In this document: piece after piece, positions 3,999-39,931 of the stretch | Numbering within the stretch: the first letter of the stretch is position 1 | Layout: every line of letters begins with the position of its first letter | Sequence record: LC592711.1 | DNA length: 64,000 nucleotides | Strand: one strand, 5' to 3' | The notes under the pieces: model-generated | What the model was told of the DNA's origin: nothing | The model's database searches: none | What the model saw: the letters and a program-made list of their open reading frames with translations, nothing else | Made by a program: the position numbers and the translations under genes

Positions 3999-4502
3999 TT
4001 ATGTCGGCTTTTTAGGCTCGTCGACATAAAACCAATCTTTCCATTTCTCAGATGTACTCCTGGCAAACTTTGAAACGCAGCTACGATCGATACCTACTGC
4101 TAATCCTGCAGCTTTGGCCGATGGGTAAACGACTCCGTTAATAGAAACGGGTTTGAATTGAGCCTCGGCAATTTTCTTTTTATGACTTTCTGAATGCTTT
4201 TTACCTAATTTACTAGCTATAACCCTGGCAATAGCATCGGGAGATCTTTTCTTGCCAGTATTACCTTCTTTCATTCTTCTGACGACGTCTTCTGGTCGTT
4301 TCCGACCTTTAAGCGATTGCCTAATCTTTTCCTTATGTTCATCAGTTAGCGCTGGTCGACGCTGACCGGTCTTAGATAACCCGCATTTAGCGCCTCTAGT
4401 TTTAGCCAGAATTTTCTTGTCGTAATTTGGATCCCAGGTCTCATTGATATTGGAGATAACATCATTGATTTCTTCTGTCGTCAATGTTTTCGATTCTTGC
4501 AT
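3999..4502 (-). CDS. NUMOD3-repeat DNA-binding protein with C-terminal NUMOD1-like HTH, no visible nuclease domain
   Basis: Repeats EHKEKIRQSLKGRK / GKKRSPD / GKKHSESHKKKIAEA then KPVSINGVVYPSAKAAGLAVGI; start moved to ATG 4502 with GAGGA RBS. Confidence 0.8.
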   Translation of the reverse strand: MQESKTLTTEEINDVISNINETWDPNYDKKILAKTRGAKCGLSKTGQRRPALTDEHKEKIRQSLKGRKRPEDVVRRMKEGNTGKKRSPDAIARVIASKLGKKHSESHKKKIAEAQFKPVSINGVVYPSAKAAGLAVGIDRSCVSKFARSTSEKWKDWFYVDEPKKPT

Positions 4503-4568
4503 TTTGTCCTCGCAAATCAAAGACAGATCTAACAAACCCTCTCCGAAGAAAGAGTTTGTAAAACTGTC

Positions 4569-5420
4569 TTAGTTCAAATGGGTTTCCCAGTAATCGGGAT
4601 AATCGCTGGGATGATTGATCATTTCAGCAGCAAGCTCCTTGATCGCACGCATACTGACCGAACCCAGTCGATCCCAGTTATGATCCAGCCAATGCAACAG
4701 TTCCTGCTTTTGCGCCTTCGTCAGATCGAAGATCTTGTTCTTCATTGTCACTGATGCAGTCCAGCCCCAGCTGACATCGCGATCGTACTTGAATTCCGTG
4801 TAAACAACGCGATCGCGTATTGCTGATTCGTCGATCTTGCGAGCGCCCTTAGGAGCCGGATTGGACGGAGCAAGAGACTGGTTGCTGGTGATGATGAAGT
4901 TAATGTTGTCGGTCGGAATCTGGATACCGACACCGTCCGCCGTCTGGAAAGCGCGCAGTGCTTCTGCAACGCGTTGCTCGTGGACCGATTCGCTCTTTTC
5001 ATAAAGCTGAATCATCGCCGTCATGTTCTTGTTCCATGCGAACATATTGCGATCTTCATCTAGAGCACCCTTCATGACCGACAGACTGGTACGATCAGCA
5101 AAAACCGAATCACAGTCATCGATCCAAACGTAGGTTTTCTTCCCACGAGAATTATGAACAGCCAAAGCTAGAGCGATGGCGATGGCATTCATGCTGGCCA
5201 CGCCGATGATTTCGATCAGAGGAATACGATGTTTCTTTGCCGTGTTCCGAACAGTCACGGACTTACCGATACCTGCGGGACCGACGATGTAGTGGTGTCG
5301 TTTCGGCACGATAAGGGCATCCGACTTGTCGAAAGCCGCCGTGACTTTACCAACGAGTTGATTGGTCAGGATTTCGCCGCGCTCGATGTTTTGTTTTTGT
5401 TTGAGGGTAAACGGTTGCAT
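4569..5420 (-). CDS. AAA+ family P-loop ATPase
   Basis: Walker A GPAGIGKS, Walker B VWIDDCD, sensor-1-like IITSN, SAIRDR arginine-finger-like segment. Confidence 0.8.
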   Translation of the reverse strand: MQPFTLKQKQNIERGEILTNQLVGKVTAAFDKSDALIVPKRHHYIVGPAGIGKSVTVRNTAKKHRIPLIEIIGVASMNAIAIALALAVHNSRGKKTYVWIDDCDSVFADRTSLSVMKGALDEDRNMFAWNKNMTAMIQLYEKSESVHEQRVAEALRAFQTADGVGIQIPTDNINFIITSNQSLAPSNPAPKGARKIDESAIRDRVVYTEFKYDRDVSWGWTASVTMKNKIFDLTKAQKQELLHWLDHNWDRLGSVSMRAIKELAAEMINHPSDYPDYWETHLN

Positions 5421-5442: not shown

Positions 5443-5484
5443 TTAATCACAGACAGATGCCTTCGGGCATCTGTCTGTGATTAA
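5443..5484. terminator. Perfect 19-bp stem-loop (terminator or processing site)
   Basis: TTAATCACAGACAGATGCC-ttcg-GGCATCTGTCTGTGATTAA. Confidence 0.7.
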
Positions 5485-5488
5485 GAGG

Positions 5489-5674
5489 TTATGCGCCTTT
5501 AACTTGCTTCTCTCGAATCAAGCGAACCATCCGCTTATAGACTTCGACGAAGGTAAAACGATATCCTGCTTTAGCCAGAGCGTTTTCAACGTCTTCGGCC
5601 GGAGTCAGAATACCGTTCTTGTCCATCGTGTCGAGAATGATCTTCTCGATCTTATCTTCTTCACTCAGAGACAT
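5489..5674 (-). CDS. Small winged-helix-like protein (array member 6)
   Basis: IEKIILDTMDKNG...AEDVENALAKAGYRFTFVEVYKRMVRLIREKQV three-helix pattern, wing truncated. Confidence 0.6.
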   Translation of the reverse strand: MSLSEEDKIEKIILDTMDKNGILTPAEDVENALAKAGYRFTFVEVYKRMVRLIREKQVKGA

Positions 5675-5984
5675 CCTTCACCTCAGCAGAAGCCGATACA
5701 ACCGGTTCCGGAGGCGTCAGATACTCGCCAATCAGTTCCATCATGCTGTCGGTCAGCCACCAGCCTTGACCCTTATGACGAGTCGCCACGCCTTCGAGCA
5801 ACAGATCCACCAGCAGATTGTTGATGTTCAGCTGCGGCATGAAGACATGGGCTTCACGCAGCTTCTTGAGCAGCAGGTTTTCGTTGATGGGTTTGTTGTC
5901 GCTCAGATACAGCGTACGAACGATGAAGCCCGACGCCGTGATATTGGCATGGGTCGAGGCATCGCCTTTCACCACGCCGCTCAT
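5661..5984 (-). CDS. Winged-helix-like protein (array member 5)
   Basis: FIVRTLYLSDNKPINENLLLKKL...INNLLVDLLLEGVATRHKGQGWWL; start moved to ATG 5984 just after the upstream stop. Confidence 0.6.
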   Translation of the reverse strand: MSGVVKGDASTHANITASGFIVRTLYLSDNKPINENLLLKKLREAHVFMPQLNINNLLVDLLLEGVATRHKGQGWWLTDSMMELIGEYLTPPEPVVSASAEVKDVSE

Positions 5985-5994
5985 GATGGACTCT

Positions 5995-6396
5995 TCAGCC
6001 CGAAAGCACGCTGCCGCCATCGACTGGATCCGTCGGAAGCCCTTGCCGTTTCGATCGATTTTTAGCATTTTTAATTGATACCTCAAAAATAAGTTCTCTC
6101 ATGTCCTGCGTTAGCTTGAACATGTTTCCCGGAAGGGAGTGTACTGCACCACGGTCTTTCAGAAACCGAAACGCCTTTTTGACATTATAGTCGGTGGCGC
6201 TGGTAATCTTTGCATGCCTCAGGTCAACTGCTACCTGAATGAAGTTATAGGGCTGGTCAGGAAAAACCAGTAAGCGTTTTAAAACCAGGACGTTTAGTCC
6301 GCCCTGAAAGCCTGATACCATTGTTGCTTGTTGGGCTAACTCACGCATCTGCGCGTCTGCTTTATTGAGCTTAGGTTGTTCTTTCAGGGCCGACAT
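5995..6396 (-). CDS. Winged-helix-like protein (array member 4)
   Basis: LVLKRLLVFPDQPYNFIQVAVDL...VKKAFRFLKDRGAVHSLPGNMFKL. Confidence 0.62.
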   Translation of the reverse strand: MSALKEQPKLNKADAQMRELAQQATMVSGFQGGLNVLVLKRLLVFPDQPYNFIQVAVDLRHAKITSATDYNVKKAFRFLKDRGAVHSLPGNMFKLTQDMRELIFEVSIKNAKNRSKRQGLPTDPVDGGSVLSG

Positions 6397-6405
6397 TAGT
6401 CGCTC

Positions 6406-6735
6406 CTAGTGTTTAGTCATCGCCTGAGAAAGAATCAGGTCGAAGATCGACGTCATCTCCGGATGGAGGCGATATGCCACGTTCGGAAACGAAGTCTTGG
6501 TTGCGAGAATGCCCTTCTGCAACAGATCCGTACATGCGTCACGCAGCATGTCGGTGATATGGATACTGTCGCATCCATAGATAGCGAATGCCATGTCTTG
6601 AAGCGACTTGGATTCACCATCCTTATCCTTCAGGTAGAACACTACCTTATGCTGGGTATCCCAGTTGTCTTGCGGCTTTGCTGCAATGATGACGGCTTCT
6701 GCCATCTGGCGACGCCACATTTGTTGTGCTGACAT
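6406..6735 (-). CDS. Winged-helix-like protein (array member 3)
   Basis: KVVFYLKDKDGESKSLQDMAFAIYG...LRDACTDLLQKGILATKTSFPNVAYRL. Confidence 0.65.
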   Translation of the reverse strand: MSAQQMWRRQMAEAVIIAAKPQDNWDTQHKVVFYLKDKDGESKSLQDMAFAIYGCDSIHITDMLRDACTDLLQKGILATKTSFPNVAYRLHPEMTSIFDLILSQAMTKH

Positions 6736-6744
6736 TTTATCCTC

Positions 6745-7293
6745 TTATTCAAAAGCCTTCTGTTTTTTGAGGACGGCGTAAAGATCGATAGCTTCCTGTT
6801 TAGTAAGCTTCGACCTGCCGACATGGATGTGTTCGAGGTTTTGCTGTGTCTCGAACAACCACAAAACATTCTTGTAAAACTGATACAGGTCGCCGATCTT
6901 GACGTTGTTGTCTTTGACCTTGATGTTGACATCAAGTAAGACTTGCTTACCCTTCTCACCCGTGTAGCTCGACATCAAACTCACGAAATCAAGCGTCAAT
7001 GAATAAAGCGTTGGGCGATCGCCTATAATCGAGCCCATCGGCTCCCAGCCTTTCAGAATCCCAGCATCGAGCAGGTCCTGCAAAGCAGTCTCAACTTCTG
7101 TTGTCGAGTACTTACCAAATGCCGTAAGACGATGGATGATTTCTTTACCATCATGTCCTTCCGGATGGCGACTTTGTTCCGATACCAGCTGAACGATACA
7201 TTCTTCAGCCGTCAGATCGCTACCATACTTGATCGATGCACATGCTTTTACTACCAGGTTCATAATGACCTTGTTGGTTTTATCGAGTGCCAT
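6745..7293 (-). CDS. Winged-helix-like protein with extra C-terminal domain (array member 2)
   Basis: EECIVQLV...GKEIIHRL...STTEVETALQDLLDAGILKG...PTLYSL; start ATG 7293 with AGGAG RBS downstream of an early-type promoter. Confidence 0.68.
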   Translation of the reverse strand: MALDKTNKVIMNLVVKACASIKYGSDLTAEECIVQLVSEQSRHPEGHDGKEIIHRLTAFGKYSTTEVETALQDLLDAGILKGWEPMGSIIGDRPTLYSLTLDFVSLMSSYTGEKGKQVLLDVNIKVKDNNVKIGDLYQFYKNVLWLFETQQNLEHIHVGRSKLTKQEAIDLYAVLKKQKAFE

Positions 7294-7342
7294 TTTAGCT
7301 CCTAATAAGGAATTGTAAAGTTTACAACAGGGATTCACGAGA

Positions 7343-7351
7343 GTTATATAT
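7343..7351 (-). promoter_or_regulatory. Putative phiKZ-type early promoter core (ATATATAAC)
   Basis: Matches ATATAT(T/A)AC seen at six intergenic sites with upstream TTT; resembles the TATTAC early element of phiKZ virion RNAP. Confidence 0.6.
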
Positions 7352-7372
7352 GTCTGAAATAAAGTGCATACT

Positions 7373-7402
7373 CATACACACTGGCGCAAGCCAGTGTGTA
7401 TG
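7373..7402. terminator. 13-bp stem-loop
   Basis: CATACACACTGGC-gcaa-GCCAGTGTGTATG. Confidence 0.7.
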
Positions 7403-7410
7403 ATGGGCGC

Positions 7411-7731
7411 TTATGCTGCGATTTTAAAATTACAAATACGGTCGATCTCCAGCCTTGTCCGCAAACGCAGACGCGACTCCTTATGCAGGCGTACGTGATT
7501 GATGGAGAAGATACGACGTTCAACCTTGTATCCCTCCGGAGTCACGAAACGACTCTTCAGGTAACCCCGTTTTTCAAGAAGCTCCATCGTCTCCATCAGA
7601 CCGTCAGCAGACAACTTACCTTCTGCATCGCGGACAATATCGGACGAAGTCTTCTCGACCCCATAAGGCGCTTTAAGAAGATCAAGAATCTGTTCTTCCA
7701 GCGCTGTTAGTTTTTGTTGGTCCAGTTCCAT
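7411..7731 (-). CDS. PadR/BlaI-like winged-helix protein (array member 1)
   Basis: LTALEEQILDLL...SSDIVRD...LMETMELLEKRGYLKSRF...RRIFSI. Confidence 0.72.
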   Translation of the reverse strand: MELDQQKLTALEEQILDLLKAPYGVEKTSSDIVRDAEGKLSADGLMETMELLEKRGYLKSRFVTPEGYKVERRIFSINHVRLHKESRLRLRTRLEIDRICNFKIAA

Positions 7732-9875: not shown

Positions 9876-9906
9876 GTTGTACACCTTTTAAAAAGAGACA
9901 TAGAGC

Positions 9907-9936
9907 ATAGACAGATGCCCGAAGGCATCTGTCTAT
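9907..9936 (-). terminator. 13-bp stem-loop with UUCG loop on the transcribed strand
   Basis: ATAGACAGATGCC-cgaa-GGCATCTGTCTAT; stem core shared with the 5443-5484 hairpin. Confidence 0.7.
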
Positions 9937-11805: not shown

Positions 11806-11814
11806 GTAATATAT
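11806..11814 (-). promoter_or_regulatory. Putative early promoter core ATATATTAC
   Basis: TTTATTTTGGAG-ATATATTAC-CT on the minus strand, intergenic. Confidence 0.68.
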
Positions 11815-30099: not shown

Positions 30100-30140
30100 G
30101 CCAATGAAAGGTTGATATGAAATCAACTTACAACAAAGTT

Positions 30141-30149
30141 GTAATATAT
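30141..30149 (-). promoter_or_regulatory. Putative early promoter core ATATATTAC
   Basis: TTTGATCAGCC-ATATATTAC. Confidence 0.65.
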
Positions 30150-39399: not shown

Positions 39400-39888
39400 T
39401 TACATCCCGTACTTCACGAGGAAGTCGTCGAACTGACGGAAGAACTCTCCACGGATATAAGTAACACCATGGAACTCCCGCGCGCTAATCCGAGATTCCG
39501 GATCTTTGCGATACGCTTGTAACATGATCTCACTGATCATACCTTCGCAGCGGCGCGCGAAATCTCTGGAATACGGAGCATCGAAACCGAAATAACTCAG
39601 TACTGCCAGATAGGCATTGACTTCGAATTCGTCACGAAAACCATCGTGATAAAATTCTTCCGTATGAGCCTGACCGATGAAACGACTCGACATCAGCCAT
39701 TTGTCGACCGTGACCTTCGCCAGTTCGAAAGTCCTCATATCGTCGTTTCGTTCAGCGAAAGCCTGGAAACGAAGATCGATTTGCTGATTGTCGAAATGAC
39801 TTCGTGGATGCTGAGCGTTCATCGACCTCAGAACTTCGCCGTCGTAAACAACATGAACCACGTACTTCTTATCCATTACAAACTCCAT
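39400..39888 (-). CDS. Hypothetical protein
   Basis: First gene after promoter at 39932; real start may be the second Met. Confidence 0.65.
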   Translation of the reverse strand: MEFVMDKKYVVHVVYDGEVLRSMNAQHPRSHFDNQQIDLRFQAFAERNDDMRTFELAKVTVDKWLMSSRFIGQAHTEEFYHDGFRDEFEVNAYLAVLSYFGFDAPYSRDFARRCEGMISEIMLQAYRKDPESRISAREFHGVTYIRGEFFRQFDDFLVKYGM

Positions 39889-39931
39889 TGTAAAAGGAAG
39901 TTCAAAGCCTTTGATTGGCTTTATCCTTTTC

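Follow-up and report, generated by a model that had tools for sequence, protein, structure and literature searches.

The window analyzed here, a 64-kb stretch of DNA (64,000 nucleotides of one strand), is 100% identical to Burkholderia phage FLC6 (LC592711.1), with window position 1 corresponding to record position 124001. At 5489-7731 (window coordinates are used throughout) it contains six consecutive open reading frames (ORFs), all on the minus strand, which are FLC6 gp135, gp134, gp133, gp132, gp131, and gp130. All six are annotated as hypothetical proteins, and the only remark on them in the paper describing FLC6 is that gp130 has no database homolog (PMC8066314). A preliminary description of this stretch had called the ORFs a tandem array of highly divergent winged-helix proteins in a probable nucleus-forming phage. 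The six ORFs are present as described, the motifs quoted for them (LLEKRGYL, DLLDAGIL, DLLQKGIL, FLKDRGAV, DLLLEGVA, and RLIREKQV) are all found in the translations, and a stretch containing an aromatic residue follows the motif in five of the six. Furthermore, Chiangmaivirus, the genus of RSL2/RSF1-like jumbo phages, has been assigned to the nucleus-forming Chimalliviridae, with homologs of the shell protein and of PhuZ (PMC11898562; see also bioRxiv 10.1101/2024.03.21.585822), in agreement with the phage type proposed. According to the analysis presented here, gp134, gp133, gp132, and gp131, with gp135 probably and gp130 possibly, arose by lineage-specific expansion of one family with a winged helix-turn-helix (wHTH) fold. 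The features of the locus are as follows.

7411-7731, minus strand: gp135, 106 amino acids; conserved upstream gene, probably a diverged wHTH protein with a basic C-terminal helix, outside the gp134-gp130 operon.
7372-7403, minus strand: terminator hairpin following the stop codon of gp135; stem of 14 bp and loop of 4 nt, with a T-rich run behind.
7343-7363, minus strand: phiKZ-type early-promoter-like motif TTTATTTCAGACATATATAAC, recognized by motif count, shared context, and conservation.
7313-7327, minus strand: palindrome TTGTAAAnTTTACAA of the leader, located after the promoter motif and ahead of the ribosome-binding site; candidate operator or hairpin of the 5' untranslated region (5'-UTR).
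6745-7293, minus strand: gp134, 182 amino acids; family wHTH domain at about residues 1-112 and C-terminal alpha/beta domain at about 131-182.
6406-6735, minus strand: gp133, 109 amino acids; family member.
5995-6396, minus strand: gp132, 133 amino acids; family member, basic (isoelectric point, pI, 10), with a KNAKNRSKRQ tail.
5661-6068, minus strand: gp131, long form, 135 amino acids (annotated as 5661-5984); family member with an ENLILKRIRE motif.
5489-5674, minus strand: gp130, 61 amino acids; last gene of the operon, by eye a three-helix pattern with no wing.
5443-5484, minus strand: strong terminator-like hairpin at the end of the operon; stem of 19 bp and loop of 4 nt, with a T run behind.

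The genes from gp134 to gp130 form one transcription unit, which runs from the promoter motif at 7343-7363 to the terminator at 5443-5484. Spacing within the unit is tight, with gaps of 9 nt each at gp134/gp133 and gp133/gp132 and an overlap of 14 nt at gp131/gp130. The terminator at 7372-7403 is an inverted repeat whose arms are 100% complementary and carry compensatory substitutions on both arms in seven phages; the stem at 5443-5484 is likewise 100% complementary. Since gp135 has its own terminator downstream, gp134-gp130 represent one operon and gp135 an upstream unit. The six genes were therefore not a single unit as initially described, gp135 being cut off by this terminator and gp130 not being demonstrably a family member. 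The annotated start of gp131 is probably too short: an in-frame upstream stretch at 5985-6068 on the minus strand (MLKIDRNGKGFRRIQSMAAACF...) is conserved, the resulting N-terminal extension aligns with the N-helix of the family, and a tblastn match of a distant homolog (P0027) extends to window position 6062. In its long form gp131 overlaps the 3' end of gp132 by 74 nt. Separately, the window has two nearly identical copies of a GC-rich hairpin, (C/T)AGACAGATGCC-loop-GGCATCTGTCT(G/A), at 5443-5484 and at 9906-9934; both copies are intergenic, with a P-loop gene directly downstream of each (gp129 and gp138, respectively), and the proteins of these two genes are unrelated to one another.

An early-type promoter had been claimed within the array at 7343, and a real motif, ACATATATAAC on the minus strand, is found there between gp135 and gp134. 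The window has five occurrences of the core TATATWAC, each on the minus (coding) strand, versus 0.65 expected, and the five sites share a T-rich upstream block with the context TTTATTTC-N4-ATATAT[TA]AC. The four further copies of TATAT[AT]AC lie on the minus strand at 11806, 28072, 30141, and 39932, that at 11806 being preceded by a hairpin resembling 7372-7403. The motif is invariant in seven related phages and is also present ahead of the array in the related contigs L015, L016, and L018 (10 related loci), and together with the whole leader it hardly varies within the genus, irrespective of which paralog is the first one downstream. Early operons of jumbo phages that encode RNA polymerases are preceded by a conserved AT-rich sequence some 10 nt long, and the motif at 7343-7363 fits this published description in being AT-rich, over-represented, strand-specific, and conserved (PMC7598289). 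Judged by its promoter sequence, the operon is somewhat more probably than not expressed early. A sigma-70-like match at 7319-7292 was considered as the gp134 promoter and rejected because the end of its -10 element directly adjoins the start codon at 7293. TTGTAA/TTACAA inverted pairs are present three times in the window versus 0.02 expected (7313-7327, 30128-30144, and 39876-39893), each immediately downstream of a TATATWAC motif, and a different complementary pair occupies the same places in L015. These leader palindromes could be operators or 5'-UTR structures.

The very low mutual identity noted for the six proteins is real: all-against-all BLASTP returned nothing below E 0.1 (best E 0.13). 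Pfam scans of the six proteins and 20 relatives gave nothing above threshold, the best being HTH_45 at E 0.038 and RPA_C at E 0.24. In PHROGs each protein falls in its own orphan family with no function, and PADLOC and the NCBI annotation supply no family name. The absence of BLASTP matches and the separate PHROGs favor a reading in which the similarity of the six ORFs is coincidental and they are unrelated small helical proteins, as does the failure of gp130 and gp135 to reach significance with HMMER. To compare profiles, family alignments were made from the orthologous loci of RSL2, RSF1, RsoM3USA, SURPRISE13, FLC4-4C, and an uncultured relative (L013); these also hold a seventh family, RSL2 ORF120-like, which is present in relatives and absent from FLC6. 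Profile-profile comparison with hhalign linked gp131 with gp132 (E 1.3e-5), gp134 with the seventh family (E 7.5e-5), gp132 with the seventh family (E 1.8e-4), gp133 with gp134 (E 1.3e-3), and gp131 with the seventh family (E 1.6e-3), and all five pairings share one register. The all-versus-all profile alignment put forward as a check on paralogy thus connects gp131-gp134, at E 1.3e-5 to 1.3e-3 and with the seventh family included.

A MAFFT alignment of the five families spans their full length, and the domain it defines is about 100 residues long. Its layout consists of an N-helix (LnKxDpxIrxLA), helix H1, a conserved Pro, H2, an H3 ending in L-x3-G-[IV], a short wing, and a C-terminal YxLTxxMxxLI helix. 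When the hidden Markov model (HMM) of the family was run against every ORF of the window, only gp131-gp134 scored, with E values of 1e-30 to 1e-36 (gp133, 4.9e-36). As these four are among the training sequences, the main conclusion from the scan is that the window has no other ORF like them, and the independent support comes from hhalign; the next-best ORF was gp130 (E 0.29), with gp135 lower down (E 1.4). Another 63 domains in relatives and fusions are matched by the same HMM. On the strength of these profile comparisons, gp131, gp132, gp133, and gp134 are true paralogs, diverged copies of one unnamed winged-helix family despite their very low identity, and it is highly probable that the operon holds a paralogous wHTH family. 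The profile-profile scores, the full-length alignment in register, the common C-terminal motif, the structure models, and the fused relatives described below reject coincidence for gp131-gp134. Coincidence survives only for gp130, and weakly for gp135, and as an account of all six ORFs it is very improbable.

Structural data were consistent with this grouping. An AlphaFold2 (AF2) model of gp134, built from a 4-sequence alignment, had a mean predicted local distance difference test (pLDDT) score of 70.6, with block means of 77-91 over residues 11-80 and 66-77 over the wing. It contains helices at residues 4-18 and 29-37, a strand at 46-48, helices at 49-59 and 64-76, a beta hairpin of strands 80-83 and 96-99, and a helix at 101-110, followed by a disordered linker and a small alpha/beta C-terminal domain. 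The model has the canonical wHTH topology of H1, strand, H2, H3, and beta hairpin (wing). Nearly all of the top 50 Foldseek matches in the PDB are wHTH regulators, with probabilities of 0.9-1.0 and a best E of 8.9e-3, including the MarR-type proteins ZitR, AdcR, and TcaR, members of the Fur/PerR, ArsR, PadR, and GntR groups, SSV1 F-93, and an RNA polymerase III chain. Against BFVD, Foldseek recovered the protein's own model, proteins of the phage HTH, PadR, and wHTH types, and A0A0A8J8B2 (TMt 0.64, root-mean-square deviation, rmsd, 4.2). The last is RSL2 ORF122 by exact look-up and belongs to the same 90% cluster as FLC6 gp133; because an ortholog of gp133 thus matches the gp134 model, gp133 gains independent structural support. 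The wHTH fold of gp131 and gp132 is predicted by homology. An HMM of the gp134 C-terminal domain also matches proteins of 304 and 181 amino acids in L015 (E 1.7e-5).

The family profile was furthermore run over 1.84 billion representative proteins, yielding 44 matches at E <= 1e-3. About 12 of these are gp131-like, gp131 being the most widespread subfamily. The weaker matches are cellular multi-wHTH proteins (library-wide E 1e-6 to 1e-3), in which the matched stretches coincide with the Pfam domains AbiEi_4, MarR_2, TrmB, Rrf2, HTH_45, PadR, and MCM4_WHD. Sequence and profile searches of the PDB gave no significant match, and the sub-threshold profile matches there were enriched in Crp, BlaI, MCM-WH, cullin-WH, and AdcR. 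Membership in MarR (PF01047), PadR (PF03551), BlaI/MecI (PF03965), and Fur was considered and rejected, since the six proteins and 20 relatives all score below the respective cut-offs. As no member reaches any Pfam gathering threshold, this is a new family within the wHTH superfamily rather than part of MarR, PadR, BlaI, or Fur, and the PadR/BlaI/Fur-like assignment made at the outset fails at every Pfam threshold. The wHTH fold itself, for which structure prediction and Foldseek had been suggested, is supported for gp131-gp134 by the gp134 model, the model of the gp133 ortholog, and homology; it is likely for gp135 and unsupported for gp130.

The two outer genes stand apart from these four. 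gp135 is 77-100% identical across the genus, and its AF2 model is of low confidence (pLDDT 51.8), with three helices, coil at the expected position of the wing, and a long basic helix. Its Foldseek matches were non-significant (E >= 0.97) and, given the low confidence of the model, were not used as evidence. A 12-sequence profile of gp135 aligned by hhalign with the 63-domain family alignment at E 1.2e-4 and 55% probability, in register over H1-H2-H3-wing; the shared part is the wHTH core only, and gp135 is without the YxLT helix. From this profile match gp135 is probably a diverged family member. The last ~30 residues of gp135 (HVRLHKESRLRLRTRLEIDRICNFKIAA; 7411-7500) and the leader at 7294-7410 are almost invariant genus-wide in protein and DNA, far above their surroundings. 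For gp130 no family link was detectable by hhalign or HMM (E 0.01-0.3), and the protein stops right after the third helix, before any wing; it is possibly a member. The six-member paralogous array of the preliminary description is thereby reduced to four certain members, one probable (gp135), and one unverified (gp130).

The family is, as far as sequence searches reach, confined to Chiangmaivirus and allied uncultured phages. By tblastn and protein searches, gp134, gp135, and gp130 were found only in the nine cultured Chiangmaivirus genomes and a few metagenomic relatives, gp130 being restricted to Chiangmaivirus-like phages. Array copy number in related phages, which had been proposed for comparison, ranges from four to seven genes after the promoter: four annotated genes and an unannotated gp132 homolog in RSL2; five in FLC6, RsoM3USA, and SURPRISE13; six in RSF1; and seven in FLC4-4C and L013. 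Extra gp134 paralogs are present in FLC4-4C, RSF1, and L013. The RSL2 homolog lies in a gap of the record (L008 1226-1561; tblastn identity 71% over 99% of the query) and represents a pseudogene or a gene overlooked in annotation. Amino-acid identity to FLC6 drops to 37-39% for gp134 and gp133 in phages whose DnaB is 89-95% and gp135 89-91% identical. The ratio of nonsynonymous to synonymous substitution rates (dN/dS) is 0.24-0.53 for gp132 and gp134 versus 0.05-0.06 for DnaB between diverged phages, indicating real, rapidly evolving genes under relaxed but purifying selection. Furthermore, in several phage pairs the synonymous rate (dS) of gp134 and gp133 is two- to fourfold the DnaB value. 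This suggests that diverged cassettes have been exchanged, in addition to rapid divergence in place. No family member was found at the syntenic locus of RP12, which represents the next cultured genus (DnaB 40% identical). Variable copy number, cassette exchange, and absence from the neighboring genus suggest an accessory function tuned to host or lineage rather than a core one.

The position of the array beside a convergent DnaB gene, which is constant in Chiangmaivirus, L015, L016, and L018, raises the alternative that its products are replication-origin binding or helicase-loading factors acting with the adjacent DnaB-like helicase, in the manner of initiators built from tandem winged helices (plasmid Rep, lambda O, DnaD). 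A lambda-O-like replication protein and a phage replication protein among the BFVD matches, and DnaD_N among the Pfam families in one profile match, are in line with this. An essential initiator would however be expected to be conserved, whereas the array genes vary in number and fall to the low identities given above next to a well-conserved DnaB; the family is absent beside DnaB in RP12, there are no iterons nearby, and the locus also accepts the unrelated insertions gp128 and gp129 (PMC8066314). A replication role is accordingly considered quite unlikely. The insertion itself, gp128 with the AAA ATPase gene gp129 (3999-5420), is specific to the FLC6 lineage and lies between the array and DnaB. 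gp128 contains NUMOD3 and I-TevI-type DNA-binding domains and has a homing-endonuclease match in PADLOC, with no nuclease domain detected; at the same site relatives carry unrelated genes of 286 or 329-339 amino acids, or nothing.

Further insight into how the paralogs may work came from phage proteins of 452-941 amino acids in the library search, which carry 2-4 tandem family domains and have no Pfam match. Genomic context could be recovered for three such fusions (L015, L016, and L018), whose DnaB proteins are 73-81% identical to that of FLC6, and in three of three the fused gene occupies the same locus. The order there is a small wHTH gene, a terminator, a ATATATAA[CT] motif, the array or fusion, convergent DnaB, and a gp126-like gene, to which L016 adds a phiKZ-type major capsid protein (MCP). 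Small ORFs neighboring the fusions in these contigs are also family members. Fusion of 2-4 domains at the syntenic locus is the main argument that the FLC6 paralogs act together, which on this comparative evidence they probably do. Two fused proteins (P0043 and P0033) had no tblastn match among GenBank phages. A suggestion that all fusions end in the gp134 C-terminal domain was dropped, the corresponding HMM reaching only E 0.49 on the C-termini of large fusions. In the uncultured relative L018, an ORF of 184 amino acids (1795-2349) lies two genes upstream of the fusion and carries a precomputed Pfam match to RNA_pol_A_CTD (RNA polymerase alpha C-terminal domain).

Nucleic-acid binding had been assumed for all members, and here the charge distribution is less accommodating. 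gp132 (pI 10.0) and gp135 (pI 8.8) are basic, and gp131, gp133, and the N-terminal domain of gp134 are neutral or acidic, H3 of gp131 and gp134 being acidic and free of basic residues. Given several acidic 'recognition' helices, DNA binding is not assured. In MarR and PadR proteins, helices flanking the wHTH core make the dimer interface, and the N- and C-terminal helices around the core of the phage domains recall, by analogy, such dimerization helices. In the proposed mechanism, the virion RNA polymerase would transcribe the gp134-gp130 operon immediately after infection, and the array proteins would then form homo- or heterodimers with a regulatory or adaptor role early in infection. Of these, the basic gp132 and gp135 may bind DNA, with the leader palindromes by three early promoters as candidate targets, and the neutral or acidic gp131, gp133, and gp134 N-terminal domain may provide partner subunits or modules for protein binding. 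Our best guess is thus that the proteins are accessory regulators or adaptors of the early phase. The complete explanation, a lineage-specific wHTH expansion in an early operon encoding dimerizing regulators or adaptors, has about an even chance of being correct; that DNA-binding regulation is the main activity is somewhat more doubtful.

Several observations weigh against this explanation. The gp134 model derives from four sequences and had no Foldseek match in the PDB at E <= 1e-3, and the membership of gp130 and gp135 is loose. The absence of basic residues from H3 of gp131 and gp134 is part of a wider pattern: mean net charge in the family is -0.8 and H3 plus wing is positive in only 40% of domains, which is atypical for DNA-binding wHTH proteins. 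Conserved columns of the alignment fall in the core (L, G, I/V, Y, L, T), and the exposed positions of H3 vary freely. With respect to regulation, the motif is the sole basis for the 'early' timing, RSL2 and RSF1 show an unusual sensitivity to rifampicin (PMC5468394), the three palindromes are not uniform in spacing or orientation and could instead form RNA hairpins, and no iterons or other repeated sites were found around the locus.

The main rival explanation is that the domains are not DNA binders and serve as protein-binding adaptors or decoys, whose variable surfaces, borne by the winged-helix scaffold, bind host proteins (of defence, nucleoid, or transcription) or phage proteins. Acidic or neutral recognition helices and unconserved surface columns around a conserved hydrophobic core would suit such a role. 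So would the evolutionary pattern, in which the number of genes after the promoter varies from four to seven with extra paralogs in three relatives, raised dS and mosaic identity indicate cassette exchange, dN/dS is 4-10 times the DnaB value, and the family is missing from the RP12 locus. The fusions furthermore resemble multi-winged-helix scaffolds, and RNA polymerase III C82 and a chain of the RNA polymerase II pre-initiation complex are among the Foldseek matches. This must be set against the lack of a match to PADLOC or any known anti-defence family, the clearly basic nature of gp132 and gp135, a gene-wide dN/dS below 1 with no sign of positive selection, and the lack of a known host target. 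On balance a pure adaptor or decoy function is rather unlikely, though it is the strongest of the competing explanations. A more specific version, in which a modular multi-winged-helix adaptor system acts at the very start of infection, with interchangeable domains (as heterodimers or in one chain) each directed at a different host or phage target and with cassettes swapped as hosts change, appears improbable.

The preliminary description had also pointed to a Z-alpha-like residue spacing in gp131. If gp131 and its relatives were Z-alpha-like sensors of left-handed DNA or RNA, the contact residues should recur, yet the helix of gp131 (NINNLLVDLLLEG) is without Tyr, and the wing WW of FLC6 is GY in RSL2, RSF1, RsoM3USA, and SURPRISE13. 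The wing Trp position corresponds to a structural aromatic found throughout the family and is Tyr in most gp131 orthologs. In favor of this reading are only a generic wHTH spacing and one histone H5/Z-alpha chimera among the non-significant PDB profile matches (E 0.49), and neither the Z-alpha family of Pfam nor any Z-alpha structure gave a significant match. The resemblance is therefore generic, and a Z-alpha function is extremely improbable. The Z-alpha domains of ADAR1 and E3L share the winged-helix fold with the phage family, in which the Asn-Tyr-Trp contact set is absent or not conserved.

MarR/PadR regulators (ZitR, AdcR, TcaR, and Bacillus subtilis PadR) have the same wHTH topology with extra helices before and after the core and are the best Foldseek matches to the gp134 model (probability 0.9-0.98), but with E values of only about 1e-2 and no Pfam match at threshold. 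Unlike them, the phage domains are only about 100 amino acids long, include several acidic recognition helices, occur as tandem paralogs and fusions, and have no evident ligand or metal site. Winged-helix proteins of crenarchaeal viruses are likewise small viral wHTH proteins (SSV1 F-93: TMt 0.61, rmsd 5.8 to gp134), but they show no sequence relation and form neither tandem paralog operons nor multi-domain fusions. Multi-winged-helix scaffolds such as C82/RPC3 of RNA polymerase III and cullin WH-B resemble the phage relatives, which likewise have 2-4 tandem domains per chain; RNA polymerase III chain O, which we take to be C82/RPC3, and a chain of the yeast RNA polymerase II pre-initiation complex are among the structural matches of gp134. 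This likeness is at the fold level, with no homology shown, and the phage family has its own N-helix and YxLT helix. Finally, paralog expansions in variable regions of jumbo phages show the same tandem, fast-diverging small genes of variable copy number between core genes (here the MCP/DnaB side and the gp135-137 side). The present array differs in that the expanded unit is a wHTH domain, a conserved early-type promoter lies ahead of it, and the domain is also found fused in multi-domain versions.

wHTH proteins rank with the most frequent proteins of phages, and at the fold level the family is an ordinary winged helix. At the family level it is undescribed, and the claimed lack of a described counterpart is borne out in that Pfam, PHROGs functions, the NCBI annotation, and PADLOC all lack a name for it. 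The array is nevertheless not a new kind of system; ranking it as the top candidate for one overstated what is a lineage-specific expansion of a very common fold. What is new is the tandem expansion behind a conserved early-type promoter, the multi-domain fusions, and the family-specific flanking helices. As a result, several orphan 'hypothetical' PHROGs collapse into one definable domain family, the bounds of the operon are set, and the start of gp131 is corrected. In nucleus-forming jumbo phages, the early accessory genes are mostly uncharacterized, and while the phage nucleus has yet to form they decide how infection is set up. A single operon, missing from the neighboring genus, here offers a small, testable target for the host-specific needs of Chiangmaivirus, phages of which are under development as biocontrol agents for rice and tomato pathogens. 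If the adaptor or decoy explanation were true, the array would be a host-takeover or counter-defence gene family, and if the modular adaptor system were true, it would represent a host-takeover or counter-defence module of a new class, based on a fold commonly interpreted as a 'transcription factor'.

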